Origin: Anthoceros angustus
Lineage: Eukaryota; Plantae; Anthocerotophyta
Length of the DNA stretch: 64,000 nucleotides
Reading direction: 5' to 3'
Assembly (NCBI GenBank): GCA_010909165.1
Contig: VJWM01000179.1
Coordinates: forward strand, 404,311 to 468,310
Shown: positions 11,901-62,387 of the stretch, one piece after another
Layout of the letters: each line of letters starts with the position of its first letter
Position numbering within the stretch: the first letter of the stretch is position 1
Made by a program: the position numbers and the translations under genes
The notes under the pieces: model-generated
What the model saw: the letters and a program-made list of their open reading frames with translations, nothing else
What the model was told of the DNA's origin: nothing
Databases searched by the model: none

Positions 11901-11926
11901 ACCTCGTTAAAGGACAAGTGCCTTGT

Positions 11927-15660: not shown

Positions 15661-15794
15661 TGGTGGTGTCCTCGCCTCGAGCTCGTCGTCTCTCACGTTA
15701 CTGCGCTCGGGCGCTCGGCGATCTGGCGTCCGACTCTCTAATTCTCCTTAACTACCTCCGTCCTCACGCATCCACGCTTTTACGGGCGATTTCA

Positions 15795-15808
15795 TTCCCG
15801 CAGCGCCA
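15795..15808 (-). other. Second (duplicated) primer binding site, degenerate tRNA-Asp type
   Basis: Plus ttcccgcagcgcca is followed by aaatgt and a partial LTR copy (15812-16284). Confidence 0.65.
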
Positions 15809-16701
15809 AAATGTGCGCGACTTTCGTGAGCGGTAGCGCACAATCCGTGTCGTTGTAGGAAGAGTCCGTTCCCAAAGGAATGATAGGCTCCGTTTGCGTT
15901 TGATTCTTCTCACTTGCTCGTTCGGTCACGCACACATTCATATTCGCTAACTACTAGCGTTCGCACGGGCCGGTATGGCCAAGCGTTTGAGACCCGTTCG
16001 CGTCCGTTCGTTCGTTCGTCCTCGCACCTCGTCATCCTCTCTCCACTCCCCACACTCTCTCGGAAAAGCTACCGCGGTCCGGACCTCCTCGTCGTTCGGG
16101 CCTCTCCGTCCGGGCTCTACGCCCTCCGAGTCCTCCGGCTCACCGCGTTCCGGTCCGTTCGGCCCGGCTGACTCGGGCGACCAGTCCCGATCACCCTTCA
16201 CCGCACACCACAACACGTTAGGTCGTCACGGGACCTGATCTCTCCGGGTCGTGCACCTTGACTCGGGACTCACGTTAGCAAGAAGGCATCCTTCAATCTT
16301 GAAGGTTGCGGCGTGCAGGGTGGTATTTCCTCCGATACCAGCAGGCAGCGTCCCGGGACCCCTTGGAGCAATTTGGATGAGCTGCGCATCCGAACCTTCT
16401 CCGTTGAAGTTTGCGCGACAAAATCCTCCACGAAGGTTTGATCTCTCTCCTTCTTACCTCCAAAGAGAATCGCTTGTCGGCGTTGTTGCCATCGCGATCG
16501 GCAAGGGTGAGGAACCGCCCTTACCACCGCGACTTGGTGCTTCCTCCTCACGATCCAACTCCACCACGCTTACATTGGTGGTGTGTCGCCTCGAGCTCGT
16601 CGTCTCTCACGTGCTGCGCGGGCGCTCGGCGCCAACGTCCGACTCTCTCGATTCGTAACTACCTCCGTCCTCACGCATCCACGCTTTTACGGGCGATTTC
16701 A

Positions 16702-19700: not shown

Positions 19701-20907
19701 TCTCCCTCCTTGAGGCTCATGTCCCCATACATGGATCGGTATGGGGCGGCCAGTGGCGAGGCTTCGCTCCTGAGCTTGCGCCTCCCAGGCGCCGGGCGAA
19801 GATAATCCTTCCCGATCCGCCCTCTTCCCCTTGGCGCATGCGGGGAATACCAACAGTTATCACCAAGGTGATCCACCTTGGTGGCGAGTTCAATGGACAA
19901 TGATCGGGCTACGCCCCCTTACGGTATCCGGCGGTCGGATATCAACCACCGTTGGTGGTCGCTGCGTTCGAGCCTCGCATCGCGGTGCGGCCCTATCTTC
20001 CCCCGCCTTGAGGGGCTCGGCACCACGCCCCTTCTTCCTCCTTTGGGCGGTTGTAGGCCTCGGACCTCAAGGTCCATCGCCTCGGGTCCTCCGGAGGTTC
20101 TTGGACCGAACCTCCTTGTTGGCCGCCACATCTTTGGGCGAACTCCGGACGGTGTGTTGTCAGCGTCGACGACAGGAACACATCCGGTGCCACTCCTCGA
20201 CTAATTCCCGCTTCCTCCGGCCGGGCCCAAAGTCCGGATAGCGCGGGTCACAATGTTGCGCTCTAGGTTCCATGGCTCCCAAACCTTCGCGAGCTTTTGG
20301 GTGCCATCGTCTCCCTTGTAGGCTGGCAGCCGGGAGGCACGTCGCCCTCCTCGCGTTGTTTGCTCCAACCCCAGCGGTGAGCCACGCTCGAAGGTGCTTG
20401 GCGCTCAAAGAGATAGCGCCCGAGCGGGTTGCGGGCGCAAGGTGTGGTGTCTCGGTGCTGAAGCCTTCCCTTGACGCGCCTTTGAAATGCGGGAAGGCGC
20501 CTCTTCCACATTAGCGAGTGCATGGCTTTTACGACCGCGCTCGCTTACTGCGGCCTTGCGCCTACGCCCGCCGATCGCGGGCGTGAATACACCTGCTGCG
20601 GCCCTGGCAGGTACGGTCTGGCTGCATGCCGACCTCCACTCGGGGCCGTCCACGTGGCGCCGCCTGTCATCCTCACGACTCAACTTCTAAGTTACTTTCC
20701 TGGCGTACTTATCTGTTTGACCGGGTGGGGTCGGACTTATCCGTTAGCGTAGTCGGTGCACCGCCATAGTGGGTCGAGTCGTTGCCCTCAGTCCGGGGTA
20801 TACTCCGGTCGGTCAGTGCTATCCGCTTATTCCTCCTTTTTCATTGATCCTCCGATCCTCTGAAAAAACAAAACCCTACTTATTCCAAAGGGAAGTCAAG
20901 TAGCCCA
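16723..20907 (-). repeat. 5' LTR (~4.2 kb) of the Athila-type element
   Basis: Colinear with 6439-10528 through ...aaaacaaaaccctac at ~20880. The last ~30 bp are diverged. Confidence 0.85.
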
Positions 20908-21345
20908 GCGTGAATTTGTATGTTCGGGTTGGAAGATGCATATCTACGGTCTTGTTGAGCGCAATCTATCAAGATCCATAGGCGAAAATGTCTTACAAGA
21001 ACACTACTTGGGCTTGAAGCTTTTGCACAAGGAGAGGTGGCATTTGTGGAGGATGAAGATGATAATGCGTTTGGGCCATCAGATGAAGAAGATGGGCCGG
21101 TCCCAGATATTTTGAGCCATTCAGATGATGGGGCATCTGAGCAGGAAGATGGTGAAGGCATGGTGTGGAATGGGGTTTTTGCATCCAAAGACGCAAAGAG
21201 GCCACATTACCCTCTATGTCGTTATAGTCCTAGGATTCGATCCCAAGGGAATGGTTTTGTGTCAAGATGTTCTAAAACTATGGATTCTAGTCCTCCTACA
21301 ATGGTTCCTACCCTACAAATCAACTACCATCAACCCGTGGTAAGG

Positions 21346-21583
21346 CCACCACCGTGGTGGCTCCACCACCGTGGTGGCTCCACCACCGTGGTGGCTCCAC
21401 CACCGTGGTGGCTGCTTCCATGACGGTGGCGGCTCCACCACCGTGGTGGCTCCACCACCGTGGTGGCTCCACCACCGTGGTGGCTCCACCACCGTGGTGG
21501 CTCCACCACCGTGGTGGCTCCACCACCATGGTGGCTGCTTCCATGACGGTGGCGGCTCCACCACCGTGGTGGCTCCACCACCA
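21346..21583. repeat. 17-bp palindromic minisatellite (CCACCACCGTGGTGGCT)n with a higher-order variant unit
   Basis: Period 17 (GTGGTGGCT at 21354, 21371, 21388, 21405). The variant GCTGCTTCCATGACGGTGGCGG recurs at ~21411 and ~21531. Confidence 0.95.
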
Positions 21584-21584
21584 C

Positions 21585-21892
21585 AGACCCTCCTTGGGCC
21601 ACAGACCCCTCCTTGGGCCACAGACCCTCCTTGGGCCACAGACCCTCCTTGGGCCACAGACCCCTCCTTGGGCCACGGACCCCCACAGGCCACAGACCCC
21701 TCCTTGGGCCACAGACCCCTCCTTGGGCCACAGACCTCACACCACCTCACAAGATGTTCCACAGATCCTCCTCTCTCGGGCCACCAGACCTCTCTTGGGC
21801 CACAGACCCTCCTTGGGCCACCAGACCCCTCCTTGGGCCACCAGACCTCCTTGGGCCACACTCCTCCTTGGGCCACACAGACCCTCCTTGGG
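21585..21892. repeat. ~19-20 bp minisatellite (CCCTCCTTGGGCCACAGAC)n
   Basis: More than ten recognisable copies with small indels. Confidence 0.93.
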
Positions 21893-22739
21893 ATTAGACA
21901 CAATCTGGTTAGGCAGTGGGTTGGGAAAGGAAAAAACAGTGAGTCGGCTCACAGGCGATTCGCACCCAGCGATCTCACCCGGTCCCTGAATTTCCCTCTC
22001 CATGCATTGAGCACCCTTCACCACTAGTCACCCCAGACGGAGCTTGGTCACTCGGCTCTCGACCATCCAGGATCTCCCGGCCCTCTTGTGACGAGAAGAC
22101 ACAATCGGCCGTCATCGATCGGATGTCTCCAACCAACCACGCAAATTCGACACACGGAGCTCACACAAATTGTCTAAGAGAGAGGCGAAGGGTCTCTATA
22201 CATCCGTGCCGCGCCATAGCTCACTTTCCCGGTGTCTAAAGATGGCTAACCTACCTCCGGTGTCTAAGATGGCTAACCTACCACGCGCCTACCAATTCGG
22301 GTATCTACATTCACAAGCTTCCTAGCACCTTATCCTCTAATCCAAGTGAAAGCCTCGACCTATGATGCCACTCCCCTCTAAAAATCGGGCCTCCCTGGGC
22401 CGCCTAACCCGCGCCCATGGGTGTTCCCTCGCTCTCCTACCACGCCTCGATCGGAAGATCCTCCCTTAATATCTCCACCTCACTCCCGCTTATCCGAGGT
22501 CCCTTCACTCCTCCTAGGAGGCGCCGTCTGCTCATCGCCTCGCGACGCTTTCGCCTCCTCATCCTGGACAGCCAAGCGTCGTTCCTCCATCCACGCTCTA
22601 GCCTCCGCCTTGCTCATTTCCTCGAGCACAACTGTGAAGGTATGCCCGGCTCCTATGGACAATCCTGGCCGCTCGAACTGAGGGAGTTGCATCCCCTCTC
22701 TGACTCCGGTGGCTTCCCCACCTTGGGTCCTTCTTCCGC

Positions 22740-22832
22740 GACGGTGGCGGCTCCACCACCGTGGTGGCTCCACCACCGTGGTGGCTCCACCACCATGGTG
22801 GCTGCTTCCATGACGGTGGTGGCTCCACCACC
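22740..22832. repeat. Dispersed second copy of the 17-bp palindromic array
   Basis: Same orientation and same variant unit as 21346-21583. Confidence 0.9.
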
Positions 22833-23011
22833 GCAGCCCGCCTTCTTCGCCTCTCTTGACCACAGCCCTAGCCTCATCTCTCCGCTTATACCTCTCCGCT
22901 AGCTTGAACTTCTCCGGAGGTGCAGGCGTCTCCACTTGTTCACAGGCCCCTGTTCTTTGAATGAAGGATCCCCACCTTATATAGACAATTTTATTCCTAA
23001 AAATCCCAAGG

Positions 23012-26000
23012 TCCAAGGACCTTCTAGCCCCGACATTCCTGTGTTCGAGGCCCAAGGACTAATTATTTGTAAAAGTAATATTGCCATGGGCCAAGGACCA
23101 CTTTTAGTATAAAGGCCTTGCCTCGGACATTTCCTAAGCACCCCATCACACAAAACATAAGAAAAACAAAAAAACATTCAAACCAACAGTCGAGGGAGGG
23201 TTAGTGTACATGTGGTCTTCCACATGGCGCGAGTTGCATAGGCCTTATTCTAGGAGGAAATGGAGCGCGGCATCGCGCCCTTCGCCCCATGAAGAAGGTG
23301 AAGAGGTGGGCGCGGCATGCATCCCAAAGCAGCGCCACCTAGCACGATGGTGCTATGCGTGAGTGAGGGGTTGGAATGCAAGAGGGGAAGGGTAGGCAGG
23401 CGGTGGGGCGCGCATCGCCGCCCGCAACAGGCGGCCGGCATGCAGCGCCCCGCCGGACTGGCCGAGGGCAAAGGCGGGCGCCGGCATGCAGTGCCCCGGG
23501 GAGGCGAAGCGGATGGGGCGGCCTGCTGCGCCTATCAAAGGCGAGGGGCGCCCAGCAGTGGCGCCCTCCACGTGATGTCGTTGAATTTGAAGATGATGGG
23601 CGCCATGGCCTAAATCACTCACCCGGACTGGCGAGAATGAATCGCCCAACCCCAAAAACGGAGGGCAACCACAAAGGAAGGCGAAAGGAAGACCAAAGCA
23701 CCAAGGGTGGAAACGGGTGATACACAGTCTCATGAAGGAAGCACGCAATCGGACTTCGGCGACAAAGACATCCAAACTCTTCACGTGGCCACGGATAGCG
23801 GCGGTTGAGGCGTCGCATATGGACGAAGACTACCTCACAAATGTACGATGCCTTACTCGAAAAAAGGTGGTGCCGTGTTGGTGAAACTTGAAAATTTGAG
23901 GCTGCATTATTCTTGACCCCGATGCCCGGATCCGGAAAGTTGATGAGGCTGGGCAAACTATCTTGCGTGTCAAAAGGGAAGGATTGAAGAAGGAGTGCTT
24001 CCCTATTATGATGATTGACCTGCAGTGCACAGATGTTGAACAACTTGATTGAACACGATAATTTTTGAAGGGGTGAATAATCTCGAAGGGGTTTTCATAA
24101 ATAATCTACGAAGGGGTTTTGATGGGCCCTAAAGCAGTTTGAAGGCATTCGGAAAAACACTCGAAAAAAGGTGTCACCGGAAAGTTACTACTTTCCATGC
24201 AATGTTTGTGTCGAATGGTGGTGCATAAACTCGAACCTAGGGAATGATGCAAAGTAGGAGCGGTGAGGAAGGCCGTTCTGCCGGGCGAGACATTGTAAAC
24301 TTCGATTTTGGGATGGAAATGTGGTTTTGTTATGACACCACAAAAGCCACCGAGGTATTTCCTAACACGAAACATCGGCAGGACTTACAACATTAACTGG
24401 GACCCGGGAAAAAGCAGATTTGATTTCACTCATCCCGAGTTCAATCCATCGTCATCACTTGGTCCGACTTCTCCTCCATTGTCATCACTATCTTGATGAC
24501 ACTTTCACTCGCGGGTATGAACCACGCAACTCATGAGCTTATCCCTTATCGCTTTTTGTCCATACGGATGTTTAGTCGTTCAACACAAACCCATGTCTGA
24601 GGATATTGTTTCATTCACAAATACCTCTGTATGTTTTTAGGTAATGGATCTTATTCCCTTTTTCCTCGGCATTGGACGGATGGGTTACCACTCTGGCGGA
24701 CTATGTTCTGCACATATCTCCTTCATACGCATCTATGTGCTCGGTCCGATACTAGTGGATAAGAAAGTGAGGTCGTGGTGCGTTTAGCTTCACGTCAATG
24801 ACCTCCCAATCCGAGAATGGCTTATGCGTGTCCGTATTGCAGCCTTTGCCGAAACATCCCTCTCGGTTCCGTTATGTCCCCATTCATCGTGCCATTTCCA
24901 TGATTGCCTTCCGCATTTTGATATGCCCCAAATACATATCACGCATGGGAGGTCCCTCAATAATGCCTCATCTAGCAAAGCTTCATCCGGCACTTGAAGT
25001 GGTGTGTATGATCCATACGTGAAAACCACTTCCAAGGACCTTCTAGCTGACATTCCAGGTTCGAGGCCCAAGGACTAATTATTTGTAAAAGTAATATTGC
25101 CATGGGCCAAGGACCACTTTTAGTATAAAGGCCTTGCCTCGGACATTTCCTAAGCACTCCATCACACAAAACATAAGAAAAACAAAAAAACATTCAAACC
25201 AACAGTCGAGGGAGGGTTAGTGTACATGTGGTCTTCCACATGGCGCAGTTAGCATAGGCCTTATTCCTAGGAGGAAATGCATCGCCGCCCCGCCCATGAA
25301 GAAGGTGAAGAGGTGGGCGCGGCATGCATCCCAAAGCAGCGCCACCCCTAGCACGATGGTGCTATGCGTGCAGTGAGGGGTTGGAATGCCCAGGGGAAGG
25401 GTAGACGAAGCGGTGGCTGCATCTGCCGGCCCGCGGCGGCGGCGGAGGGCGCCCCGCCTGGCCGAGGGCAAAGGCGGGCGCCGGCATGCAGTGCCCCGAG
25501 GGCGGCGAGATGGGGCGGCCGGCCTGCGCCCCATGTTCCAAAGCGGGCGCCGGCCGGCGCCCTCCACAGCAGACGTTGAAGTCGAAGATGATGGGCGCCC
25601 GGCATGCGCCCTATCACTCGGCTGGCGAGAATGAATCGCCCAACCCCAAAAACGGAGGGCAACCACAAAGGAAGGCGAAAGGAAGACCAAAGCACCAAGG
25701 GTGGAAACGGGTGATACACATGTTGGCTCATGAAGGAAGCACGCAATCGACTTCCGGCAAAGAATGACATCCAAACTCTTCACGTGGCCACAGATAGCGA
25801 GCGGTTGGAGGCGTCGCATATGGACGAAGACTACCTCACAAATGTACGTCAGTCTGCTTACTCGAAAAAGGTGGTGCCCGAAACTGTGTTGGTGAAACTT
25901 GAAAATTTGAGGCCTGCATTATTCTTGACCCCTGATGCCCAGATCCGGAAAGTTGATGAGGCCTGGGCAAACTATCTTGCCCGTGTCATTGCAAAGGGAA

Positions 26001-27070
26001 GGATTGAAGAAGGAGTGCTTCCCCTATTATGATGATTGACCCTGCAGAGTGCACAGATATTGAACAACTTGATTGAACACGATAATTTTTGAAGGGGGTG
26101 AATAATCTCGAAGGGGGTTTTCTGCAAATAATCTCTGAAGGGGGTTTTTGATGGGCCCTAAAGCAGCGTTTTGAAGGCATTCGGAAAAACGACTCGAAAA
26201 AAGGTGTCACCGGAAAGTTACTACTTTCCATCCGGCAATGTTTGTGTCGAATGGTGGTGCTCGAACCTAGGGAATGATGCAAAGTAGGAGCGGTGAGGAA
26301 GGCCGTTCTGCGGCGGGGCAGTATGGCTTCGATTTTGGGATGGAAATGTGGTTTTGTTATGACACCACAAAAGCCACGAGGTATTTCCCTAACACGAAAC
26401 ATCGACGGACTTACAACATTAACTGGGACCCGGGAAAAAGCAGATTTGATTTCACTCATCCCGAGTTCAATCCATCGTCATCACTTGGTCCGACTTCTCC
26501 TCCATTGTCATCACTATCTTGATGACACTTTCACTCATGAGTTGTATGAACCACGCAACTCATGAGCTTATCCCTTATTTTGTCCACGCATACGGATGTT
26601 TTATCGTTCAACACAAACCCATGTCTGAGGATGGTTGTTTCATTCACAAATACCTCTGTATGTTTTTAGGTAATGGATCTTATTCCCTTTTTCCTCGGCA
26701 TTGGACGGATGGGTTACCACTCTGGCGGACTATGTGTTCTGCACATATCTCCTTCATACGCATCTATGTGCTCGGTCCGATACTAGTGGATAAGAAAGTG
26801 AGGTCGTGGTGCGTTTAGCTTCACGTCAATGACCTCCCAATCCGAATGGCGTATGCGTGTCCGTATTGCAGCCTTTGCCGAAACATCCCCTCGGTTCCGT
26901 TATGTCCCCATTCATCGTGCCATTTCCGATTGCCTTCCGCATTTTGATATGCCCCAAATACATATCACTGTGGGAGGTCCCTCAATAATGCCTCATCTAG
27001 CAAAGCTTCATCCGGCACTTGAAGTGGTGGTGTGTATGATCCACTTACGCGTGAAAACCACTTCCAAGAC
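23012..27070. repeat. Tandem duplication of a ~2.02 kb block (23012-25030 and 25031-~27070)
   Basis: The copies are colinear and the junction lies at the shared TCCAAG(G)AC. Differences are mostly small indels. Confidence 0.92.
25730..26290 (+). pseudogene. Degenerate coding fragment, possibly ParB/Srx-like domain (second copy at ~23715-24260)
   Basis: PETVLVKLENLRPALFLTPDAQIRKVDEAWANYLARVIAKG..PLLMMID..WALK resembles a ParB N-terminal pattern, but the GxH motif is not cleanly recoverable. Confidence 0.35.
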
Positions 27071-28761
27071 AGCACTAGCCCAATGTTATTCTCCACAATG
27101 ATAGCAATCTCCTTCCGGTCCACCCAAAAGGCTTCCCACCACTTATACTCTTCAGTCACCTATGGGCGCAAATCTTTTAACCCTTCACACAAATGGGCCA
27201 CACCTTCCATCGGTGATAGGATACAGTTCCTTCTTGTCCCCCTAGCTTCACCGTATGCATAGGATGGTGCTAAGGGAGGCGCGGCCAACCGGCGCCCTCC
27301 CCAAAGATGCTCATGGGCCGGCCGGCCTCCCCTAACACACCCTACCCATGGCGGCCGTGGCCGCCACCCCGGCCTTAGTTCTCTCCACCAAGTAATGGCG
27401 CTCTTCTCCCGAGGTGGTGGGCCCCATCGCCCTTGCCTCGCGCCATGACCCATCCCATGTCCATAGCACCTGTCTAGGTGAATATACGTGTGATATACTA
27501 TACCATACACGGCAACCCGTGGCGGCTGCGTCGTTCATGGCTCCGGTTTGTGGAATGGCGGTTGGGGTTCATTTTAAGCGCGAACGTGCCCTAATCGGCC
27601 GCGAATCGGACACAATCCAGTTTGTCCAAAATCAAACGTGTTCCCAACATTGGGAACGTGTATCACGACACAAGCTTGGCCGCACGCATGCCGCGATCTC
27701 TTCGTGGTGTGAGCATGAATTGCATCGGACTTTCGCTGGCGGGCGGCGTGGAGATCAGGTGGAACCAATGTGTTCAATGGAAGGCTTGTCCATCTGCATT
27801 GCCAATGGAATTGTTTCGATTTCGAGAATGGTGAGGTGAAGAGCTTGAAGGCTGTAATTTCTACGATGCTCCACGCTCACGTCTGCGGAAGATGGTGAGA
27901 CACAGCAGCGGGCGCCATCCAACACTGGCTCAAGCATTCGCAAGGCTCCTTGAAGGATCTGTTTACCTCGTAACTTTGCATTCTTACGCATATTGCAATT
28001 TCATTCATCTGAAATGGCATGACCCTTTGTGAGCAAGGATCTAAGGCTGTTATGTCTACAATCGCCCCGGACTTTGTGAGTATGGATACATGCCCTCTGC
28101 GACTTCGATTGTTGGGCATTTGAGAAGAAGATTTGATGGTTGCCCTCGAAGCCTTTGTGAAGATGGTTACTGAATGTCAAAATAGCCTCGTTTCACAGGA
28201 TAGAGTGGACGATTTTCTTGCGAGAACTCTGTTCCCCACAACGCTTGTAAGGCGTAATGTCAACGGTCCACGGACCCGTGTCGTCTGCCTAATTCACCAA
28301 GCTCATATATTAAATATGAATGTGCTTACGGACCACAAGATTTTCTTACGGTGTGGAGCCTTTCATTGATGTGACAAACCGTCAAAAAGGGGAAAGGCGC
28401 GCCGTCACGCATGAAGCCGATAGGAAAAGGGGTGTAAATTCCAGTTCTTCATCGATTATTGCAATGGCGGGAATTGCAGAGAATCAATTCAATGGCACCA
28501 CATAGACATGAATGGTGATTTACGCCATGGTTTGTTAGCTCTTGATGCCCTAATGTTTCTCTTGCTCTGTTTTATCTATGGCAAAGCGGAATGGGTAAAG
28601 CACAAGCTCTTATGCCGGTGACCAATTACCAAATTATGTGTGATCATGAGGAGGATGTGTATCGCAGAAGAAGGACAACCCAAGATGCCACTTGGTCCGG
28701 ATGATTTCTTATTGCCCAAGGATATAAGAAACATACAGAGCTTGATTGCAGGACATGGAGA

Positions 28762-29373
28762 TTGCATCATCTTGATGAGGAAAGTGTGAGAATATGGATG
28801 GACTTACACAAGCATGAGATTTTCTTTTCTTCCTTCAGCTCTAAGTCTACTGACGGGTGTCACTTTGCACTGGGTATTCAGACACCATTTCAGCACTCAT
28901 GTATGTTGAGGTGGGGCCATAACTCGATTGTCTCTATGGATGCCACGTTCAGGACTAACAAATGGAAATTTCAGTTGTTTACAGTGTTGGTCTTCGATGA
29001 CCACATGAACGGGCTACCAGCGGCATGGATCATTTCTGACAACGGCACTGCTGACAATATTAGTGCATGGCTGGGGGCTTTAAAGCAGATGTTGGAGAAG
29101 TCGATCCAGTGGAAGCCCAATGCTTTCTTGGTGGGTGATTGCCAAGCCGAGATTAACGCTATCGACAAGTATTCGGCTCTAACATGTTGGTGTTTTTGTT
29201 TGTGGCATGTGCGCCGTGCTTGGTTGAGACAACTCATAAAGAAGGTGAAAAATAAAGTCGGAGGCGAGATGATGAGCACACTTGGTAAAATTATGTATAT
29301 GGAGGAGCAAGGCTGCGGTATGGAGAAAGTGCGGGCGGAGCTTGACGCATTCTACTCGACATACGCAATATGA
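28762..29373 (+). pseudogene. MULE transposase DDE domain (part of a frameshifted gene, ~27750-30325)
   Basis: SMDATFRTN..QLFTVLVFDD..GLPAAW; FLVGDCQAEINAI; FCLWHVRRAW. Confidence 0.9.
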
Positions 29374-29762
29374 GCCCAATTTGTGACTTATTTTAAGCGG
29401 CAATGGGCGATTATGACTATGTGGATCAAAGCTGGAAGTCCCACATGCTGGCCAAGAGGCGCATAGAAGCCTACCACCAGCACTTGAAATTCGGATGTCG
29501 CTAACGAAGAAGCGGCTTACGGTGAGCGTTTAGATTGGTTACTTCATATCCTTGTGGATGAAGTCAATCGGCATTTTGGTTCCAATCACAATGCAAGTTG
29601 CTGAATATTGTTCACAACACCAAGTTGAGAGACTTGTGCACCATGCAATTACTAAGGCACTGCAAATTCCAAATGTGGATGTCACACTCCCGACAACGGA
29701 TAATGCTTCAGCATACGTTAAAAGTCGAAGGCACTTAACGGGTCAGTGAGTCGAGGTGCTAA

Positions 29763-30080
29763 ATGGTGGAAGGCGGTGGGGCTTGCAACTGCAAACAAGG
29801 ATTGAATGGCTTTGTTTGCAAACATCAAGTGAAGGTTTTGCTGATGTTAAATCGAATGACAGCTACACAGATGCTTGTGCACAAACTGATGGATATGTCG
29901 AAGGAACATGGTACTGATAATTTCAATTTGGCAAGTCAGGTCATGCACACAACAAGTTATGAGGAGCCTGCAGTGAATGTTTGCCAGGATGGGCATGAAC
30001 TACGCTGCCCCAAACAGGATGTTGTCCAAGAAGGGCCCCAAGTACCTTGCCTGAACCAGGTGTCCAGTCCATGGACGTGA
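29763..30080 (+). pseudogene. SWIM zinc-finger segment of the MULE transposase
   Basis: CNCKQGLNGFVCKHQVKV fits CxCxnCxH. Confidence 0.85.
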
Positions 30081-30546
30081 GTTGGGCAGAGATTAGGGGA
30101 ATGGTGGAGAAGTGGCCACAGTTAGAAAATCATGTTGCTGCCATGATGGGACAATTAGTAAGGCAGGTCCAAGGGTTGGGCGCTGATCTTCATCTTCACC
30201 AGTTGCATGAAACACCAATTCTACACCACAATCCTGCTCATACAGACAATTCTCTTAAACGGAAAAGCCTTTTGGGAAACGGGAGGAGTCGGCAGAGGAA
30301 GAACGGCCCCAAGATCAGAAAGTGAAATTCCAGTAGGTCAAACATACAACTGCCTATAGTTCCTAGGCCTTAGCACATAGAACTGCCTATAGCTCCGAGG
30401 CTAAGCTTAGAAAGTTGTGCGAACATGGCAGCCTAAGTTACTGAGCCTTGGAATTTTGCTCTACAGTCTTGGATGTTCTCCTCTCAGTTGTATGTTTCAC
30501 CATTTTTGCCAGTCAGCGTGGAACATGAGCTATCAGAGTCACGCTC

Positions 30547-30686
30547 CGTCTGCCGATAAGAGTCCGATCCCATGCGCTCCAAGAGGTGGAGGCCCCGTCG
30601 CGTTGCCAAGCGGACGTCTGCCGATAAGAGTCCGATCCCATGCGCTCCAAGAAGAGGTGGAGGCCCCGTCGCGTTGCCAAGCGGAT
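30547..30686 (+). repeat. ~69 bp tandem duplication adjacent to the right TIR
   Basis: cgtctgccgataagagtccgatcccatgcgctccaag..gaggtggaggccccgtcgcgttgccaagcgga occurs twice. Confidence 0.92.
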
Positions 30687-31739
30687 TGTGTCGATTTGCG
30701 GCCGTTTAAAATGTGGCTGTTTGGCGAACTGATTAGGGCACGTTTCGCGCTTAAAATGAACCCCAACCGCCATTCCACAAACCGGAGCCATGAGCACGCA
30801 GGCCGCTACGGGTTGCCGTGTATGGTATAGTATGCGCTCATACGTGTATTCACCTAGACAGTGCTATGGACATGGGATGGGTCATGGCGAGGCAAGGCTA
30901 GGCGATGGGGCCCACCACCTCGGGAGAAGGCGCCATTACTTTGCGGGGAGAACTAGCCTCCGGTCCCAAACGCCGCCTGGGCGGCCCGGCAGCGCCCTCC
31001 CCTAACACACCACCACCCATGGGCGGCCGTGCGTCCTCCCCCCCTGCCGCATGGGCTGGCCGGCAGCGCCCTCCTCTTAGGCTGTTTTCTAGAAAATAAA
31101 TATTTAGCGCCTCAAGAGTATTACAACCATGGACAGTTGGTCTAGTGTTTGGGAAATAAGTGTTGTGACGAATAGGTTTCGTGTTCAAATCTCATGCCTC
31201 CTCAACAATTTAATTTTGTTGATTTTAAGGATGCTTGCATGGGCGCATGGGCAACTAACTTTGTTCATTTTAAGGACGCTGGCATTGCCTTAAAGCCCAA
31301 GTGGTTGCATTGAGTGCGGAAGGTTGAAGACCACGGTGGCGACCTTTTGGATGAGGGTCGGCGGACCCTAGATCTTTGTGGCGATCGACACGTGAGTGGG
31401 CCAAGAATGATACTATTGAAGGCGAGCAAGCAATGGAGAGAAACGACAAAGGCGGAGGATATGGACCGCCTCGAATATGGCGGTGGTACTTGACTCGATT
31501 TGGCGCAAGGCATGGATGAGTCGCCAGCCGCACTCTTGAATGACTATTGTCGATCGATGACCACTTCCTCCTTTTTGATTGTTTGTTGCAATGTTCTCAC
31601 GACCAAAATGAGACTCCGCTAGAATGCATTGTTTTCATTGTGTTCCACCACTTGAAAGTAAAAGTTTTCGGTTGTAATAAACATATGAAAATGGCAGCCC
31701 TCTATGCATTCTACTAAAAGCATAAGCGGGCCCACACCC

Positions 31740-33849
31740 TCATGCTCCAGGTTCGGGTGTAGACTTGAAGAGCATCTTTTATCAAAGGTATGACCTCGAG
31801 AAAGGGTGTGTGCATTATCAAAGTAGGGCACATATCTTTGTTCTAGGTAAGGTGTTCTTCGTGACAAGTCTTTTGTCTCGGCGAAGGGGTCGATATCCCC
31901 TTCAAAAATTATCGTGTTATTGGAAAAGGTTTAGAGTGAAGAAGTATGTGATGGGCGTACTGCGAGGGAATCATACCTGCGCCCATGCGATCCTGATCGA
32001 GAAGGCCCGTCGTGGATCGAAGCCCATGTGTATTGTGGCCTAACTGTCACTGAGATGAGGATTCTGGCCACCGATCACAACCAGATGGCGGACAAGCAGA
32101 AAAAGATAATTTTATTGAGCAGGTTCGGTATCTGAGGGATGAGTTGCAGATAGCTAAGCGAGATCACGTCAGCATGACCATGAACTGGAAATTCAATCTA
32201 TACAAGGTGCTAGGTTTGATTGAAGACGACGAAGGCCGAGAAGATGAGCAGTACAAGCAGAACAAGGTCGACAACAGAACCCACATACTCTGCATTTCAA
32301 AACTAGAGGGCAAGGTATGGGAAAATGTAGATAAAATTTTTTCCAAGTGGGAAACTGGTGAGCTACTGGAGCAGGCGAAGCATGTCGCAGCAGGAACAAG
32401 CAAAAAGAGCAAAGGCAAGAGGAAAGCAACCGACGACACAAAACAGGTTGATGGAGTTTTTGTGAACCCCAAAGAAATGCAGGGGAAGCCGTGGCGAAGC
32501 TTTCAAGGTGTCCCACATGGACAGCCAGGACAACAGATGCTGATAAGTTCAACAGAGAAAGTACTAACTGGCCTCCTGGATCTGAACGGAATGGCGAAGG
32601 AAGTTACCCTTCGGAAGAAATTTCATGTCATACAGGTGGCAATGGCTAAACATCTGGCTTGTGACTCCTTCGAAATGGTGAGACAAGAATACCCTCAACA
32701 CTCTTCACACGAAGTTATTGCCAGATTTCAAACCGCTTTTGAGGGCAATGTAAACATATTTCCTTCCATTATTTGCAAGATCCTCGAGGCGCGGCATGCG
32801 GCTTCCCTCTCATGCCATGGCCTTGCACTGTCACACGCTAACCCATTTCGTTTGACACCCATTCAGCAAATTAAAGATGTTGAGGACCTGAAGAAGCTAC
32901 CTGAAGATTTTCAAGCCTTTATTCTCGAGGTTCATACATGGAAGGGACTCGAAAATGAGCAAAGAGAGCTAGCTGATATGGACATGGAGGAGGGGCTTCA
33001 ATCCTTCACAGTGCCAAAAACAGAGGATATTGTGAAGTACCAGGTCATTGCAAGAGATGCAGCAGACATGAGGGGGTTCCTCAGGATCCGCAAGTACACT
33101 CTGATGATCATGGATGTGCCCCGAGGATTCAACAAAGGTAAACATGATGTCAAGTTAGATCTCTTTCAATTGGGAAAAATGTTTCACTCGTTCCACGACA
33201 TGACCAGCTGCCAGGAGATGAGAATGATAGTGATGCATGAGGTTGAAGAGCAGCATGTCGTCAGGGAGGCAATGCGAAAGTGCTGCAGAGGAGGGGGGCT
33301 GGTGTCTTTTGTATGGGACAAAGCGAATATACTGACTTTGGTGGCTACGACACTATGGAGTATGCGTCACAATAGGATGGGGTTAACATTTGTGACCAAA
33401 GGTCAAAAGTCTCCATGATCCCTACTGACATTCATGGGTCTTTCAATAATGGGCGAGCAGTCATTGCCCACCCTACAATGGTGAAAAAGTTGTTGTACAC
33501 ATCATTGGACAAGCTGGTGGTATGTGCTTATCAACGGCCTTTGTCTTTGATGATGAAGCTCATCAAAAGTTTCTCCAAGGAGGGGGACTGGATTTTGGAT
33601 GTTTGTGCTGGTAGTGGGTCAACAACATTGGCTGCTTTGCTTTGCGGGCGCAACTGCATTGCAATCGAGGTGGACAAAAGGTGCGCAGAGTTCATTCCCC
33701 AGAGAATCCATGGCTATGAAGTGCTCCCGGACGCAGAAGAGGAGTTGAATCACGAGCCACATCGGCGAGGACCGACCCAGTTCTGGGCAAAAGAGGTGAG
33801 TCTATCGAGAAGGATGGGTCGCGCGGGTTGTGCGTTTGGCCCCAAGTAA
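31740..33849 (+). CDS. ParB-like domain + beta-class amino-DNA methyltransferase (N4-cytosine/N6-adenine family), several frameshifts; true start uncertain
   Basis: ParB-like YVMGVLRGNH...AHVYCGLTVTEMRILATDHN (31940-32085). Motif IV-like YTLMIMDVPRG (DVPR at 33113). C-terminal YQRPLSLMMKLIKSFSKEGDWILDVCAGSGSTTLAALLCGRNCIAIEVD. Confidence 0.8.
33415..33849 (+). CDS. SAM-binding C-terminal part of an N6_N4_Mtase-family DNA methylase
   Basis: Close match to the family pattern (H/Y)Q(K/R)PxxLxxxLIxxxSxxGDxVLDxxxGSGTTxxAAxxxGRxxIxxExD. Confidence 0.9.
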   Translation: MIPTDIHGSFNNGRAVIAHPTMVKKLLYTSLDKLVVCAYQRPLSLMMKLIKSFSKEGDWILDVCAGSGSTTLAALLCGRNCIAIEVDKRCAEFIPQRIHGYEVLPDAEEELNHEPHRRGPTQFWAKEVSLSRRMGRAGCAFGPK

Positions 33850-35102
33850 GGAGAAGTCCGCGACCTCCTTGACGTTGGGCGGACCTTGGCCTGTGTGGCC
33901 CCAAACGACTCCATCGGGCCGGAGAAGACCATTCCATCAAGATAATGCCATGGAGGAAATTGACAACTTTGAAGACACGGAGCACGCTCGCCTGAAAGGA
34001 CTGGAAGTTGTTATGGATAGCGTGTCTGGACAATGTCCTCCAGATACTCAAACCGGCATGGATGACCATTGTCCTTAGGCTCGACAGTCCAGCTCTCTTA
34101 AGCCATAGACATGTGTGGAACATTATAATCGGAGAGTAGTCGCCGTCATGCCGGCGCCGTCCTCTGCTTTCCTTCTCGCAACATGCATTAAGAACATTGT
34201 TTTCGAGTTCGCCATATTAGTCATTTCGATAATTTACTGGATAAGGGCCCGGGCCCGTATCGGCCGGAAATATCCGTACTGCTGCTCGCGTCCTTCCAAC
34301 CACACACATAATCCGCTGTTTTGGTTACTGTAGAGAAATAACAGAAGCGGCTTCTTTTCTGTGGGAAGCGGCTTTGTATATTGAGCCCCTTCAAATATTA
34401 TCGTGTTACTTTTCTAGGCTTGGTACTGAACCTTCTTCCCATCTACCATTCTCTTTTTACTTTTGCCCTATGGAATATCAAGTTTTACATAGTCGTTACT
34501 ACTAATACGCCCATCAATACAACCACACATAAATACCCATATCAATACGTTCTTCGTACTATACGTGTATCATTTACGATGACATATACGGTATCACATT
34601 TTCAATGATATATGTTCATATTATATTTTGTATGTAATAAATATGTATGTCATATGAGTTACGTACGTATGCTGGTCTGTACATGTTTATTTTTCTCTAT
34701 CCACTGCCTCCTAAAAAGGCACATCTTGAATTTCATCGATTGCCTCCTCTTCTGCCTCCATGTTCTCCTCTGCATCACCGCCATTACGTGTCCCCCCCAC
34801 GGCCATGAACTGTCGACTTCCCCTCGCTTTTTTTCAACGCACCTAAATGTTCCCCCTCTAGTCCTCCCTCCTTCTCTCTCCCCCTAGACAACTGCCTCAT
34901 GTCTTCTGGCACCTTTTGCCCTGCCTCAACCATGGTCATTGTTGGTGATGTGCACAAGGCGAGGCTGGACTCTTAGAAGATAAGAGGCGATTTTTGGTTT
35001 TCTTTAGTGTGGGTGTGGAAAATAAGACGAAAAAAGGGAAATAAGGTTGAATAGGGGGAATTGCGATGGACAAGAGGATAGGAGAAGGCGACCGAAGCAG
35101 GC

Positions 35103-35200
35103 CACTCCGGACTAACTCCGGAGCAACACACTCCGGACTAACCCGGAGCATGACACTTCGGACTAACCCGGAGCATGACACTTCGGACTAAACTCCGGAG
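35103..35200. repeat. Four tandem 25-26 bp units, each a CTCCGG-n5/7-CCGGAG hairpin
   Basis: Units start at 35103, 35129, 35154 and 35179. Confidence 0.92.
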
Positions 35201-35399
35201 TAGGTCACGGTAAGTCCGCTGGGAAACGTAACTGCGAAAAAGGGGTGGAGCGTAATAAGCAAGAGGGGGCCACGTGTACGATGCTGAGAGGAGGACGGGG
35301 ATGCAGGGGACCACGACCGGAGAGTTGTCAGCGGCCGTTATAGGCAGGTAACCACGACCCAAGGACATGCTAGGAGCGCAGGAATCAGAGGGCCGCCCG

Positions 35400-36340
35400 A
35401 ATGCACTTTATTGTTTGGGATATGTTGGATGGTTTAATTTTTTTGCAGATGTAAAATGTTTTGAACTTGTAGAATTTGTTCAGAATGTTAATATGTGAAA
35501 TGATATTTGTTGAAATTGTGAGTCCATGGACTGATATTTGTTAGAACTGTGAGTTTACAGATTGGAACTTGTTGGATTTGTGAATTTGCAAACTGGAATT
35601 TGTTAGAATTGTGAGTCTGCGGATTAAAATTTGTTGGAATTTTGAATCTGCAAACTATAGTTTGTTGGAATTCTGAATCTATGGAATAGAATTCGTTGAG
35701 ATTGTAAGTCTCTGGATTGGAATTTGTTGAGATTATGAGTCTGCGAACTAGAATATGTTATAATTGCTAGTTTGCGGATTAAATTTTTTTGGAGTTGTTA
35801 GTCTACGAATTGGAATTTGTTAGAATTGTTAGCCTGCGGAATAGAATTTATTACATTTGTTTGCTTGCACATTGGAAGTTATTGGAATGGTTTGCTTGGG
35901 CATTGAAATTGTTTGTCTACACATTGATATTTATTAGAATTGTTTTTTTGCACATTGAAATTTGTTGGAATTGTTTTTCAGAACATTAGAATTGTTTCCT
36001 TGCATACTAAGATTTGCGGAAGTTGAATCCTTGCATACCTAAATTTGTTGCAACTGTTTGCTCGCACGATGGAAACTTATTCAAATTGTTTGTTCATGCA
36101 ATGGAATTTGTTGAAATTGATTTTTTGCATACGAGAATTTGTTAAAATTGATTGCACAATAGAATTTGTTGGAATTGATTGCATGCACTATTGAGTTTGT
36201 TGAAATTGATTGCATGCACACTTGAGTTCATGGGAATTGATTCAATGCACGCTTGAGTTCATTAGAATTGATTGCATGCATAATTGAATTGATTGCATGT
36301 ACAATGAAATTTATTTCAACTGTTTGGCCTCAAATTGGAA
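35400..36340. repeat. Degenerate AT-rich tandem repeat (GGAATTTGTT(A/G)GAATTG..., ~30-40 bp units)
   Basis: The motif atttgtt(g/a)(g/a)aatt recurs many times over ~900 bp. Confidence 0.75.
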
Positions 36341-36555
36341 TTTTTGAGAATTGCTTGCTTTTGTCACATCCAATACAATTTGAAAACCTTAAAAAAAGAA
36401 TCAATTGGAACTCTTATGATATGTATGGATGATACTCAAGATAATTCTACATTCTGACCTGACGAAGTACCTACGTTACCTTTTCCTCATAGCTAGAAAG
36501 GAGATAGAGGTTTGTTGATAGTAGGGACGCAAAACATTTCAGCAAGCTAGAGACT

Positions 36556-38864
36556 TCAGTCCAAAAATTTTGGTTTTATTAAAATGAGATGGGAAGAGAA
36601 ACCGATCCGTTCTTCCTCTTGGACAAGATTTGCAGATACTAAGTACATATGTAATGAAAATTTTAAAGACACAAACATTAAGTACATAAAAATCGCTTTT
36701 TGGAATTTTAAGGACATAGACATTGAATCCATAAGATAAGCAGATTTTTTCTGATGGAAAGACATGCTAATGTGATGCGCTATCTGCGTGGCCTCAAAAG
36801 ATGTTCCATTAAGTCCCCGTCTAGACATTCCAACGATATATAGACCTCGTTGTCCCTTCCATCCGTGCGGAAAAGAAACCTTTGGTAAACCGTTGTCTCC
36901 AAAAAATGTATTATCCTATACCACAACAACAGAATTTGGTAATTTGTAACCTCACAAGTTGTTTCCAAGCAATTTCCAGACTAATTATTTAGAAGCAATT
37001 TTTTAAGCTCTTGCAAAACCTTATTTGATAGTCAAGACCTTCTAAAAAACTCAAATGACTGTCGTGAAACCAACCAAAATGAGCACCTACTTTGCTCTCT
37101 CTTCTACATAGCCAAATCAAATGATTAATTCTCATGTTATTTAATTATATATAAATATATAGATAATTATTTTATTCGTCTAATATTTGATTTAAAGATT
37201 TATAGGTAAATAATTAACTATCAATTATCATTGATCAAAGATATAAAATGAATAGTTAAACTATCGTTCCCTTTTCACTAAAGATTTAGAACTAATAATT
37301 AATTATTATTTATCATTGATCAAATAAAATATTATTATCATTGGAAACTATTATTTATTATTAAAAAAAATTAAAAAATTAAATTAATAGTTAATTAACT
37401 AACTTAATATTTTCAATCAAAATAATAAATAAAAATTATTTACTATCTAAAAATAGTTAGATATCTAACTACTCTGTCAGAATATTTAACTTAGCTCTAT
37501 AAAATACTCTATAAAATACTTAAATAACTCTAGAGAGAAATAATTATATACTTACTTTAAGCCATGTGATGACGTTACTCATAAAGCCAGTGGCCCATAT
37601 AATAGAGTCAAATTCTTGATATGTGCCATCGACAAATTTTGCTCCACACGCGGAAAGACAGTGCACAGCAGCTGTAACCTGAAACTTGGAAGAACGAAAC
37701 TTCACAAAAATGTTCCTCCAAAGTCGTAGTCCTACTTGAAAATGGTGGTTCGTCCGAGTCCTCCTTCACAAAGGGTTTTGGAATTAGGGTTCCATGGGGT
37801 GCTAGCGAACACATACCTTGACATGCCCGCTCCGAATCTTAGCAAGAGTTCCGACATCCAAGACCGGTGTCTTGCCAAGGGTGTCCTTGAGCTCGATGGG
37901 ACCCTTGGCGGGGCGGCAGATCCCGTAGCGGGCTGTGTTGCCCATAAGCAGCCAAGTGTAGAACACCACGATGTAGTCTGTGAGCCACATGGGGAATACT
38001 CTCAACAGAGTCATGGCCACTTGTAATGTAGAGCGGCCGAGAACCTCCCTGGGCAGCACATGCACCTACAAGGCGGGTAGAATGTAAATGCATATCTCAA
38101 CGCACAACATGGAGGCAAAAACAAAACATCAGCTAGCTGCTGGCTTGCAGCAAGTGCATGACGGTGAGCAGTCATCTCACTGGACTGCGGACAGCGATGG
38201 TGGGCCGGGCACCATGGTTGGCCAGGTCAAGCGCGATCACCATGCCGGAGTTTCCGCAACCGACGACGAGCACCCTCTTGTTCCGAAAGTCGGAGCCGTT
38301 CCGGTAGAGGCTGGAGTGGAAGGCCGGGCCTGCGTAGAGGTCCATCCCTGGCAAGCGCGGCGTGACAGCCTCCGCATTCTCCCCCGTGGCCACGATGAGC
38401 CATCTGGTGACATACTCCTGGGCCTGGCTCAGCTGCGGGCCATGGCGGCACGTCCTGACGCGCCACAGGTTGATGGCGGAGTCGAAGGTGGCGGAGGTGA
38501 CGCTCTCGTTGAACTGCGGCTTGATCTGGAACTTCGCGGCATACTCTTCCAGGTAAGCGATGAAGTGCTGTCTGGTGGGATACGCCGGGCATTCCTCGGG
38601 GAACGGCATGAGCGGCAGCTCGCAGAGGTGCTTGGGAATGTGCAGATGCAAGCGGTCGTAGGTCTTGTATTTCCACAGCGACGCGATGCAGTCGGCCCGC
38701 TCGATGACGAGGCTGGGAATGGCCTTGGCCCGCAGCGAAGCCGCGGTGGCCAGCCCCGCCGGCCCCGCCCCAACGATGACAGGCCCCTCCACCAGACGCA
38801 CCAAGGGATCCGGATCGGCCTCCTCGGACTCAGGGCCCCAGCCGTGAGCGTAAAAGGAAGGCAT
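36556..38864 (-). CDS. YUC: YUCCA-family flavin monooxygenase (indole-3-pyruvate monooxygenase-like), 4 exons, 471 aa
   Basis: Exons 38864-38181, 38065-37817, 37678-37556 and 36915-36556, all GT-AG and in frame. Motifs [49 protein letters not shown]. Confidence 0.95.
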
Positions 38865-39774
38865 TGTCCAGGCGAGCTCCGGATGGGATGGATCCCGCTC
38901 CCGAGAAATCGATGGTTTTTTGGGAATGTTTTGGACTTGTCTTGAAACCGACCAGACTGAGAGTCGGAGACTACTGCAACTGCTTGAGGGTGTTGGGTTC
39001 CACGTGCTTCTATTCCCCGCAGGTTCATGTTCTTGAAACTTCCACACCCAAAACAGCAGCCTGGGAATCGGGGTGAGGATGCCATGAACGATGCATTTCC
39101 CACAGCCGCCCGTGACGCAAAAGGAAAGCGATCCTGCACGTGCGTTAACGGACCACAGCTGCATTTGGGCGAGAGATTCGAGGCGGTGCGCACCAGCCGC
39201 ATTGGCACACCACGCACCACGACCCGCCCGCCTGGGCAAGCACTCAATCTCTCATCATGCGCGTTCCTGGTAATGGTGTGGTGCCAGGCCAGGCCGGGGG
39301 GCTGGAGACGGGACCAGGTGACCAGGTTGCATAAACTGGGCCGCGGCAGAGACAGGCATAGATTTTGGGAGACCGGAAAAGAAATGGAAAGACTCCCAAC
39401 AGAATTTGTTTAAGGTGCTTGCCACGCTTACATAAAAAGAGAACCCACTGTTTCGGCCTTCTGGCCACCCCTCTGGTGATTGGTACCGACGTACTCCCTA
39501 AGCAATCATACTACACCTCTCGGTTATGTGTGCAGGGCTAGGTGATGTGGAGGTCGCTGATGCTTATCTTGGTCTCTTATTATGTGCAGCTGTAGCATAG
39601 CCCACGATGCTCTGAGAAACTGAACCATATCCACGATGATGTGAGAAACTGAACCAATGCTTGAGGGATTGATGATAGAATAGCCCATATGTATATGAGC
39701 ACATGTACTTTTGTATTGAGTCGTCATAGATGGACAGTACATTCATCAAGCCCTCATGTTTGAGATGCATATGT

Positions 39775-39960: not shown

Positions 39961-40060
39961 TAGAGCCTCTTTCAAAGCGGGCCCGCAGGTTGGAAACCTG
40001 TTTAGGCCTTGGAGAAGGTGATTATGAATCAATACTTTTCTTGATTCTCAAGATTACTTT

Positions 40061-40305
40061 CTTGTATGAAGAAAGTGTGTTGCATTCTTGTATGAAGAAA
40101 GTGTGTTGCATTCTTGTATGAAGAAAGTATGTTGCATTCTTGTATGAAGAAAGTGTGTTGCATTCTTGTATGAAGAAAGTGTGTTGCATTCTTGTATGAA
40201 GAAAGTGTGTTGCATTCTTGTATGAAGAAAGTGTGTAGCATCAAGATTGCTTTCTTATATGAAGAAAGTGTGTTGCATTCTTGTATAAAGAAAGTGTGTT
40301 GAATT
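40061..40305. repeat. 26-bp minisatellite, about 9 copies
   Basis: cttgtatgaagaaagtgtgttgcatt at 40061, 40087, 40113, 40139, 40165, 40191 and 40217, plus two variant copies. Confidence 0.95.
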
Positions 40306-40623: not shown

Positions 40624-42093
<1,470 letters not shown>

Positions 42094-56100: not shown

Positions 56101-56548
56101 GCAATTGTTGGAAATGCTTTGGTTTCTTAGTCAATTGCTCTCGCTCTTTTTTACACACCTATTTCTGGACATAATCAATGGTTGCTTAGTGTTAGCCATC
56201 TTTGGTAAGCAAGTATGCCCAAGAATGACAATGTTTTGAAGAGACTTAGAAGTAGGTAGTCTTCTAGACCTAAACACTTTGTTGAGTTTTTTTGAATAGT
56301 TTATTAATTTAATTTATACAAATAAGATTTTAAAACTGTAAAATATAAACTAATAATATATAGGTCTTATCTATTGAAGAAAAATAAGGCCCATATAGGT
56401 ATTAAGCACTTAATTTTATCTAATTTAATAAAAATATTATATTTTTAATTAGAAAACTCTAAAATTATTTTGATACATGTTGAAATTTTACCTTCTGTTA
56501 AAAAACCTTTTCGTCGGAGGGGTGCCCAAAACCTTATCCCCCTTGGGG

Positions 56549-56666
56549 TATAGAGGCCTAGGGTTTTCTATGGACATCCATCTTGCTGGGCACCCATCTA
56601 TTCCCGCATATACAGGCCTAGGGTTTTCTTTGGGCATCCATCCTGCTGGTCGCACATCTATTCTCG
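56549..56666. repeat. 60-bp tandem duplication
   Basis: tata(g/c)aggcctagggttttct..catccatc.tgctgg..catctatt occurs twice. Confidence 0.88.
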
Positions 56667-58961: not shown

Positions 58962-59071
58962 TGCCGCACTAACGAAAGTACATAGATCTGTCGCACTAGC
59001 GAAAGTACATAAATATGCCGCACTAGCGAAAGTACATAGATCTGCCGCACTAGCGACAGTACATAGATCTG
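58962..59071. repeat. 27-bp tandem repeat, 4 copies
   Basis: tgccgcactagcgaaagtacatagatc units. Confidence 0.93.
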
Positions 59072-62362: not shown

Positions 62363-62387
62363 AAAGTCTCCATTTCATAGTTGAATT

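Follow-up and report, generated by a model that had tools for sequence, protein, structure and literature searches.

A probable relic of a transposon-type accessory gene with ParB-like and methyltransferase domains in Anthoceros angustus

Results and discussion

A probably inactivated ParB-like/methyltransferase gene

We analyzed a stretch of 64,000 nucleotides (nt) from contig VJWM01000179.1 of Anthoceros angustus (the window), in which a first-pass annotation, made from the sequence alone, had placed a ParB-like domain fused to a prokaryote-type methyltransferase at 31740-33849. Three protein parts are encoded on the plus strand between 31942 and 33849: the last portion of a ParB-N-like domain, a helical middle domain and an amino-methyltransferase domain of the beta class. 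With a probability of about 0.8, this locus is an inactivated copy of an accessory gene of transposon type, in which these three parts would have been joined. As assembled, the copy at 31942-33849 is dead and nothing functional can be made from it. All three motif groups of the first-pass annotation were located on the plus strand in three reading frames, and their arrangement, with the ParB-like domain N-terminal to the beta-class amino-methyltransferase, represents a real architecture. The placement of the gene within 31740-33849 holds for its 3' part but not for the gene as a whole, the first half of the ParB-like domain being found at 25784-26100.

The stop-free stretch from 32054 to 33415 comprises 454 codons, for which the probability in random sequence is about (61/64)^454, roughly 3e-10. 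Because of this low value and of 23 significant homologues, the coding stretch cannot be ascribed to chance. The homologues were identified with the 424-amino-acid (aa) piece of the gene as query, which was searched exhaustively against 1.8 billion representative proteins. Only these 23 were returned, the best with an E value of 4e-29 and 36% identity. The named ones are two proteins of Adiantum nelumboides and gene models of Ginkgo, whereas all others belong to contigs of the sample pair SRR33208241/2. Three further Ginkgo paralogues were obtained by a profile search. The Ginkgo relative P0018 (670 aa) aligns with all frames of the window, in order. A word-based homologue search with either open reading frame (ORF) returned nothing, and a search of the Atlas with the 424-aa ORF gave only noise. 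As these relatives have an intron position in common with the copy, the gene belongs to a small and old eukaryotic family and is not a contamination.

Methyltransferase domain

The ORF at 33415-33849 matches the Pfam profile PF01555 (N6_N4_Mtase) with 48.9 bits (cut-off 26.7, E value 1e-12) over profile positions 164-217 of 221. The search with this profile hidden Markov model (HMM), which the first-pass annotation had proposed, thus gave a match above the curated threshold. The same ORF also matches the NCBIfam model of CcrM (5e-9) and related adenine methyltransferase models. The 424-aa piece, which carries the first half of the domain, shows no PF01555 match by itself; it is covered by the family profile, which pairs the block at 32867-33415 with the region DPPY...W.K.N of M.MboIIA and CcrM. 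Among solved enzymes, M.MboIIA (9e-12), CcrM (8e-11), M1.HpyAVI and M.RsrI are matched by the family profile along the full length of the domain, and the alignment sets D-i-P-y-G-f of the family against DPPY. Matches of the same profile to N4-cytosine (N4C) enzymes are much weaker, with 7e-5 for the rotifer N4CMT and 0.07 for M.PvuII.

A motif-IV-like D-V-P-R-G is located at 33113-33127, upstream of motif I (LDVCAGSGSTT, 33595-33627). Because motif IV precedes motif I, the methyltransferase shows the order of the beta class, as had been predicted, and the same order is seen in the alignment with M.MboIIA and CcrM. Both motif I and the acidic residue that follows strand 2 are retained, and the reading frame ends with a stop codon at 33847-33849. 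A canonical GTGAGT donor is present at 33798, directly after ...FWAKE in the last part of the 144-aa ORF. In the ancestral gene, the true C-terminus may have been encoded by a further exon downstream of this site.

For the analysis of the fold, the AlphaFold model of the Ginkgo relative P0018 was used and not the broken protein of the window. The methyltransferase part of this model has predicted local distance difference test (pLDDT) values of 80-97. The best Foldseek match was M.MboIIA (1.6e-12), followed by CcrM (5e-12), BceJIV and RsrI (2e-11), while the rotifer N4CMT was matched more weakly (3e-8). If any member of the family is active, N6-adenine would be a likelier target than N4-cytosine, because motif IV starts with D and not with the S of the TSPPY-type N4C enzymes. 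N4-methylcytosine (4mC), which had been proposed as one possible product, is less likely in view of this residue and of the better match of the family to N6-adenine (N6A) than to N4C enzymes.

The ParB-like and helical parts

The ParB-like part of the 3' block is divided between two frames. GNH is found at 31969-31977, and WIEAHVYCGLT..E..ILATDHN follows at 32010-32081 in the other frame. Taken alone, the segment at 31942-32014 gives a weak match (E value 0.27). In the Atlas, residues 95-215 of the fern relative P0007 fall among clusters of ParB_N and DUF6551, with feature scores of 0.88-0.90 and template modelling (TM) scores of 0.60-0.69. ParB, Noc and KorB stand first in a Foldseek list that was obtained with a low-confidence model and is otherwise non-significant (E values 0.3-2). 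The motif order of the family (a strand, R..D..W, LPLLVVIDP, YVLGGNHS..AR and V.AGLT..E...LA.DHN) fits the canonical order of ParB. CTP-binding ParB (CTP, cytidine triphosphate) carries a G-x-R-R arginine box, which is absent here: the family has G-G-(N/T/C)-H-S-x-x-A-R and the window R-G-N-H-T-C-A-H-A. On the basis of the Atlas placement, the motif order and the similar description of the published Ectocarpus accessory protein, the label ParB-like for the N-terminal part is probable but not proven. The middle domain follows; in the Ginkgo model the matching part is helical, at pLDDT values of 70-92.

A probable first half upstream

The first half of the ParB-N-like domain was identified at 25784-26100 by tblastn, with the upstream ORF of the related contig L003 (E values 1.4e-5 to 2e-6) and with the related contig L004 (39% identity over 46 aa, E value 8e-6). 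Its last residues, ...IMMIDPAEC...FLKG, abut in the protein the start of the 3' block, KKYVMGVLRGNH. The two halves are 5.8 kb apart, and the ParB-like domain is broken after the 'IDP..C' strand. The relatives have no intron at this junction. From these end points it seems rather probable that a single gene was split by insertions into the fragment and the 3' block. A reading of 25730-26075 as a second, diverged ParB-like cargo gene was discarded in favour of this one.

The DNA in between and around consists of several layers. A tandem duplication of 23012-25036 and 25031-27068 is 90% identical with many insertions and deletions, and both units contain the 5' ParB-like fragment. Downstream of it lies a Mutator-like element with a PF10551 (MULE) match (E value 3.5e-12) and a SWIM finger at 29763-30077. 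No clean 9-bp target duplication was found for this element; a possible 4-bp duplication, GCCT, is present on both flanks. The high-copy repeat that follows ends right where the ParB-like 'GNH' segment begins. The mobile-DNA setting of the first-pass annotation is real; plant retrotransposons and the Mutator-like element surround the locus. The coordinates of the main features are given in Table 1.

Table 1. Features of the locus and its surroundings in the window.
Feature	Positions	Strand and frame	Remarks
Array of CCACCAC-c-GTGGTGG, 17-nt unit	21346-21582		11 copies
Degraded duplicate of the 5' fragment	23760-24070 (approximate)	+	in first unit of the 2-kb tandem duplication; from translations and self-alignment
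ParB-N-like domain, first half	25784-26100	+	VKLENLRP...IRKVDEAW...GVLP, frame slip, then IMMIDPAEC...
Nested Mutator-like element	27376-30955	+	inverted repeats of about 220 bp, 27376-27596 / 30955-30731, 90%
High-copy repeat	31202-31956		word depth in DNA run X1: 1000-3900, gene body 0-58
Open piece	31765-32043	+ frame 1	ending ...KKYVMGVLRGNHTCAHAILIEK...
Open piece	32028-32135	+ frame 3	VYCGLTVTEMRILATDHN...
Open piece	32144-33418	+ frame 2	424 aa; 454 codons from stop to stop
Open piece	33415-33849	+ frame 1	144 aa
ParB-N-like 'GGNHS..AR' segment, here KYVMGVLRGNHTCAHAIL	31942-32014	+ frame 1	aligned to YVLGGNHS of P0001, P0013, P0007, P0018
ParB-N-like domain, end, WIEAHVYCGLTVTEMRILATDHN	31992-32104	+ frame 3	tblastn with P0001/L004, 49-54% identity, E value 3e-10
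Helical middle domain	32108-32749	+ frame 2	W.K.N.Y...VW..VD.IF..WE...PWR.FQG...L.L..M; 35% identity to P0001 over 218 aa
Conserved intron	32750-32866	+	117 nt, GT..AG, phase 0; spliced and unspliced relatives at the same site
Methyltransferase, N-terminal half	32867-33415	+ frame 2	D-V-P-R-G, then ...IVMHE..., FVWDKANI; aligned to P0004, P0008, P0018, P0023
Methyltransferase, C-terminal half	33418-33849	+ frame 1	YQRP...GDWILDVCAGSGSTT...GRNCIAIEVD; 51% identity to P0019 over 89 aa
Flavin monooxygenase	38172-39239	-	host-type; nearest Streptophyta YUCCA-like clusters
Aldo-keto reductase	41488-42093	-	host-type gene

Lesions, intron and expression

Three lesions interrupt the reading frame of the 3' block. 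Between GNHT... and ...SWIEAHVY, near 31990, the copy has lost 6-7 codons. Near 32105, a slip of 1 nt occurs in an A run, and the stretch from DHN over 13 residues to VRY is as long as in P0001. At 33414-33416 a further change of 1 nt is found, where GQKSP/MIPTD aligns with GEQCPQMINFKD of the Ginkgo relative P0018 on both sides. Because the homology runs on at both sides, these frame changes are lesions and not introns. An intron of 59 nt at 33402-33460, which would connect frames 2 and 1 without loss of phase, is ruled out by the P0018 alignment across 33415. The alternative exon 'QSRAHIFVLG' (31819-31848, GTAAGG donor) is probably a chance resemblance, as both the high-copy repeat and a short repeated motif cover it.

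One true intron was identified within the gene (32750-32866). It is stop-free and in frame by chance and is hence hidden in the 424-aa ORF. At this site, pairs of spliced and unspliced relatives were found: P0001/P0024, L003/L006 (112 nt removed), L004/L007 and P0007/P0002 of Adiantum. L006 corresponds to L003 without three introns (99.7-100% identity) and L007 to L004 without one intron. These four contigs originate from SRR33208241/2, i.e., from one study, and within each pair the only difference is the precise loss of segments of 90-266 nt. As far as these contigs indicate, family members are transcribed and spliced in the organism of SRR33208241/2; the spliced contig still carries stops and frame breaks.

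For the host itself, reads from runs that were found through the neighbouring host genes were placed on 30900-35400. DNA run X1, which derives from the same organism, gave short contigs of depth 9-58 and about 90-95% similarity which represent paralogous copies, and the run of a second organism contained more diverged copies of the family. All read pieces in the gene region were paralogous only, with 85-95% similarity. No contig of RNA run X2 covered the gene, although this run is small and hence weak evidence. The first-pass annotation had considered an enzyme that writes 4mC or N6-methyladenine (6mA) on plant DNA, possibly a domesticated one. Neither idea is supported at this locus, with three frameshifts, a ParB-like domain split by 5.8 kb and no transcript in X2.

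Motif IV and the arginine subfamily

The canonical catalytic tetrapeptide of amino-methyltransferases, (D/N/S)-P-P-(Y/F/W), was not found in the copy, which has D-V-P-R. Its motif IV is therefore not a canonical catalytic site, as it lacks the second proline and the aromatic residue. Within the family, most members have D-[IVLA]-P-[Y/F], D-I-P-H occurs in Ginkgo, and D-[LV]-P-R is present in seven aligned rows including the window. In a maximum-likelihood tree these seven R-type rows are separated from the others by a branch with support 95/90; the copy of the window is itself placed on a long branch. The arginine codon differs between the copies (AGG, AGA or CGA), and one R-type copy, P0004 from the sample pair SRR33208241/2, has an intact methyltransferase ORF of 446 aa. 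Because of the single supported branch, the three codons and the intact R-type ORF, the arginine is an old and maintained trait of a subfamily (D-[LV]-P-R-G), and neither decay nor a private mutation.

It is unlikely, though worth naming, that the Arg-type fold is a retooled methyltransferase on land-plant transposons instead of a dead enzyme. Such a protein might be an enzyme dependent on S-adenosylmethionine (SAM) with a new target or a base-flipping 'reader'. Its ParB-like domain might then tether it to the palindrome arrays of the element, where it might help in self-marking or in the escape from silencing.

Weighing of the explanations

Several observations speak against an inactivated accessory gene of transposon type or against parts of this explanation. 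Apart from the nested Mutator-like element, no transposase domain was found in ORFs of at least 95 aa in the regions 1-6400, 20883-27534, 33695-38023 and 52695-63629; this search was based on Pfam domains, which a decayed or Pfam-invisible transposase could escape. Between 20700-21400 and 34000-38100 no inverted match of at least 10 nt exists, and neither terminal inverted repeats nor a target duplication were found around the gene. Because a carrier transposase and element ends are lacking, the term transposon-borne is derived from the relatives and from the literature. A transposase beside the gene together with shared terminal inverted repeats and target duplication, as would mark a Sola1 element, was likewise not seen in these regions. 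For the N-terminal part, ParB_N (PF02195) was not matched in Pfam, neither by the N-terminal parts of four relatives (E value up to 10) nor by the pieces of the window (E value up to 1). The HMM check against the ParB/Srx clan that had been proposed for this part thus yielded only weak matches to DUF6551 (1.5e-3 and 0.03). No ParB was found in a profile search of PDB sequences with the N-terminal part of the family. The fold models of the ParB part are of low confidence (mean pLDDT 47.7 for the model of the ParB and middle parts). The origin from one gene is inferred from protein end points that abut, and the two single-base frameshifts could be assembly errors.

If assembly errors or introns accounted for all of the frame changes, the gene could be functional and the plant could write 6mA or 4mC with it. 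The long stop-free stretches (454 and 157 codons), the true intron hidden in frame and the A run at the frame change near 32105 are in agreement with this, and so are the transcribed and spliced relatives in the other sample and the intact R-type ORF of P0004. However, the homology is continuous across the frame changes without extra sequence, the 6-7 lost codons are not explained by an intron, and the ParB-like domain is interrupted by 5.8 kb with a complete Mutator-like element where relatives have no intron. Together with the absence of RNA over the gene in X2 and the motif IV without aromatic residue, this renders a functional gene improbable. The Mutator-like element could also have carried the methyltransferase as cargo or accessory gene, since its transposase is located 2.5 kb upstream on the same strand and, for the red alga Chondrus, the literature mentions accessory genes of this sort on giant Mutator elements. 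Its inverted repeats (27376-27596 / 30731-30955), however, enclose only the transposase and exclude the methyltransferase, and its position between the ParB-like halves is the pattern of a nested insertion, so that this connection is very improbable. The design of ParB with an N6_N4 methyltransferase is typical of phage ParB-terminase loci and the best named models are bacterial, as expected for bacterial or phage DNA that entered by contamination or fresh horizontal transfer. The spliceosomal intron site, however, is common to the fern and other plant copies, and because it is shared with these relatives, contamination and recent bacterial transfer are effectively refuted. In addition, the nearest relatives are plant gene models (23-49% identity), the locus is situated among plant retrotransposons, the Mutator-like element and a YUCCA-like gene, and paralogous contigs occur in the DNA run of the organism. 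A recent bacterial or phage source thus has hardly any probability left.

Comparison with known systems

The fusion of ParB-like and methyltransferase domains is not novel, as it has already been published as an accessory gene of a transposon. According to a 2025 publication, the Ectocarpus element Sola1-1_Ec32 contains a transcribed accessory gene with ParB-like DNA-binding and N4C/N6A methyltransferase domains, and its protein was proposed to bind and mark the own transposon DNA (PMC12477816). Similar cases of green and red algae are cited there (PMC12477816). Compared by its published description only, this protein shows the same two domains in the same order as the family described here. 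In contrast, the present family belongs to a land-plant lineage and its members have about 650-760 aa instead of 1104 aa in Ectocarpus. The window copy is broken, has a D-V-P-R motif IV and shows no Sola1 transposase or ends in the regions searched.

With the bacterial enzymes M.MboIIA, CcrM, M.RsrI, M.BceJIV and M1.HpyAVI, the family has the motif order, the G-S-G motif I, W.K.N and QKP in common. These N6-adenine enzymes have D-P-P-Y, whereas the family has D-[IVLA]-P-[YFHR] and the window an arginine at the aromatic position. They are also intronless and carry neither a ParB-like nor a helical N-terminal extension. A ParB-type module associated with or fused to an amino-methyltransferase was described in ParB-terminase loci of phages and prophages, and genes of this type were also transferred to eukaryotes (Iyer et al., 2016, PMC4738411). 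The ParB-fused 'chlorophyte-type Dam' family of chlorophytes and chytrids belongs to the Dam/DpnM group (group 2) (PMC4738411), whereas the family described here is of the MboIIA/CcrM-like beta class.

MpDN4MT1a/b of Marchantia and N4CMT of bdelloid rotifers have a (T)SPPY motif and proven 4mC activity. Like the family described here, they represent a prokaryote-type amino-methyltransferase fold in a eukaryote, but they have no ParB-like domain. The present family differs from them by D at the first position of motif IV and by its better match to N6A enzymes. In the red alga Bostrychia, PAG2 and PAG3 of the giant Plavaka DNA transposons comprise ParB-like N-terminal and N6A-methylase domains, with arrays of inverted repeats beside the ParB-type gene. 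Palindrome arrays are also present in the window, but in Plavaka the ParB-like domain is fused to a 2-oxoglutarate (2OG) oxygenase and the methylase to SET, and the carrier is of a different transposon superfamily.

Transposons with a DNA-modifying accessory protein of their own could write or mimic epigenetic marks on themselves. This bears on the co-evolution of mobile DNA and host silencing and on the scattered eukaryotic findings of 6mA and 4mC. The present copy is a relic, of a design already published for algae. What the locus adds is a record from land plants, an intron site conserved between distant copies, and D-x-P-R as a selected trait of a subfamily.

Palindrome arrays and a possible mechanism

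An array of the palindrome CCACCAC-c-GTGGTGG is located upstream of the tandem duplication. Including three more copies at 22753-22801, the window contains 14 copies, compared with 0.02 expected. It is a speculative candidate for the binding array of the carrier element. CCACCACCGTGGTGG-type arrays are candidate sites for the ParB-like and helical parts. The arrays of the window recall the inverted-repeat arrays that stand beside ParB-type genes in red-algal Plavaka elements, a resemblance that serves only as a lead.

In intact relatives, the transposon's own short palindrome arrays are probably the sites to which the ParB-like and helical parts fix the protein. There, the methyltransferase fold would bind SAM and act on a flipped base or at least grip it. 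N6-adenine would be the likelier target in those members that keep Tyr or Phe, while the arginine subfamily may have altered or lost catalysis.

Further repeat arrays were detected in the window. A 19-nt array (CCACAGACCCCTCCTTGGG) at 21581-21892 follows the array of the 17-nt unit. Tandem units of 25 nt with CCGGAG..CTCCGG occur at 35092-35200, units of 31 nt with TTGCAA or TGCATGCA at 35505-36315, and units of 26 nt with TTCTT..AAGAA at 40059-40305. Outside the window, a 16-bp palindrome (TGTATTCCAGAATACA) is repeated at 8221-8494 of L002, 1.5 kb upstream of the Adiantum family member. In L003, an ORF for an Ulp1-type protease (Peptidase_C48; 11918-12892, minus strand) and a fragment of a RecQ-type helicase (15394-15961, plus strand) are found a few kb downstream of the ParB-methyltransferase gene. 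Both may be further cargo of the carrier element.

Host setting

A plant host, as presumed before, is likely: the neighbouring flavin monooxygenase gene falls into a Streptophyta YUCCA-like cluster, and relatives of the broken gene come from Adiantum and Ginkgo. An aldo-keto reductase gene of host type follows further downstream, and additional ORFs similar to flavin monooxygenases are present elsewhere in the window. Near the right end, at 63263-63709 on the minus strand, a second and heavily decayed fragment of the family was identified. It runs from the last part of the ParB-like domain into the beginning of the middle domain, shows 31% identity to P0001 with several stops, and is nearer to P0001 than to the copy at 32 kb.

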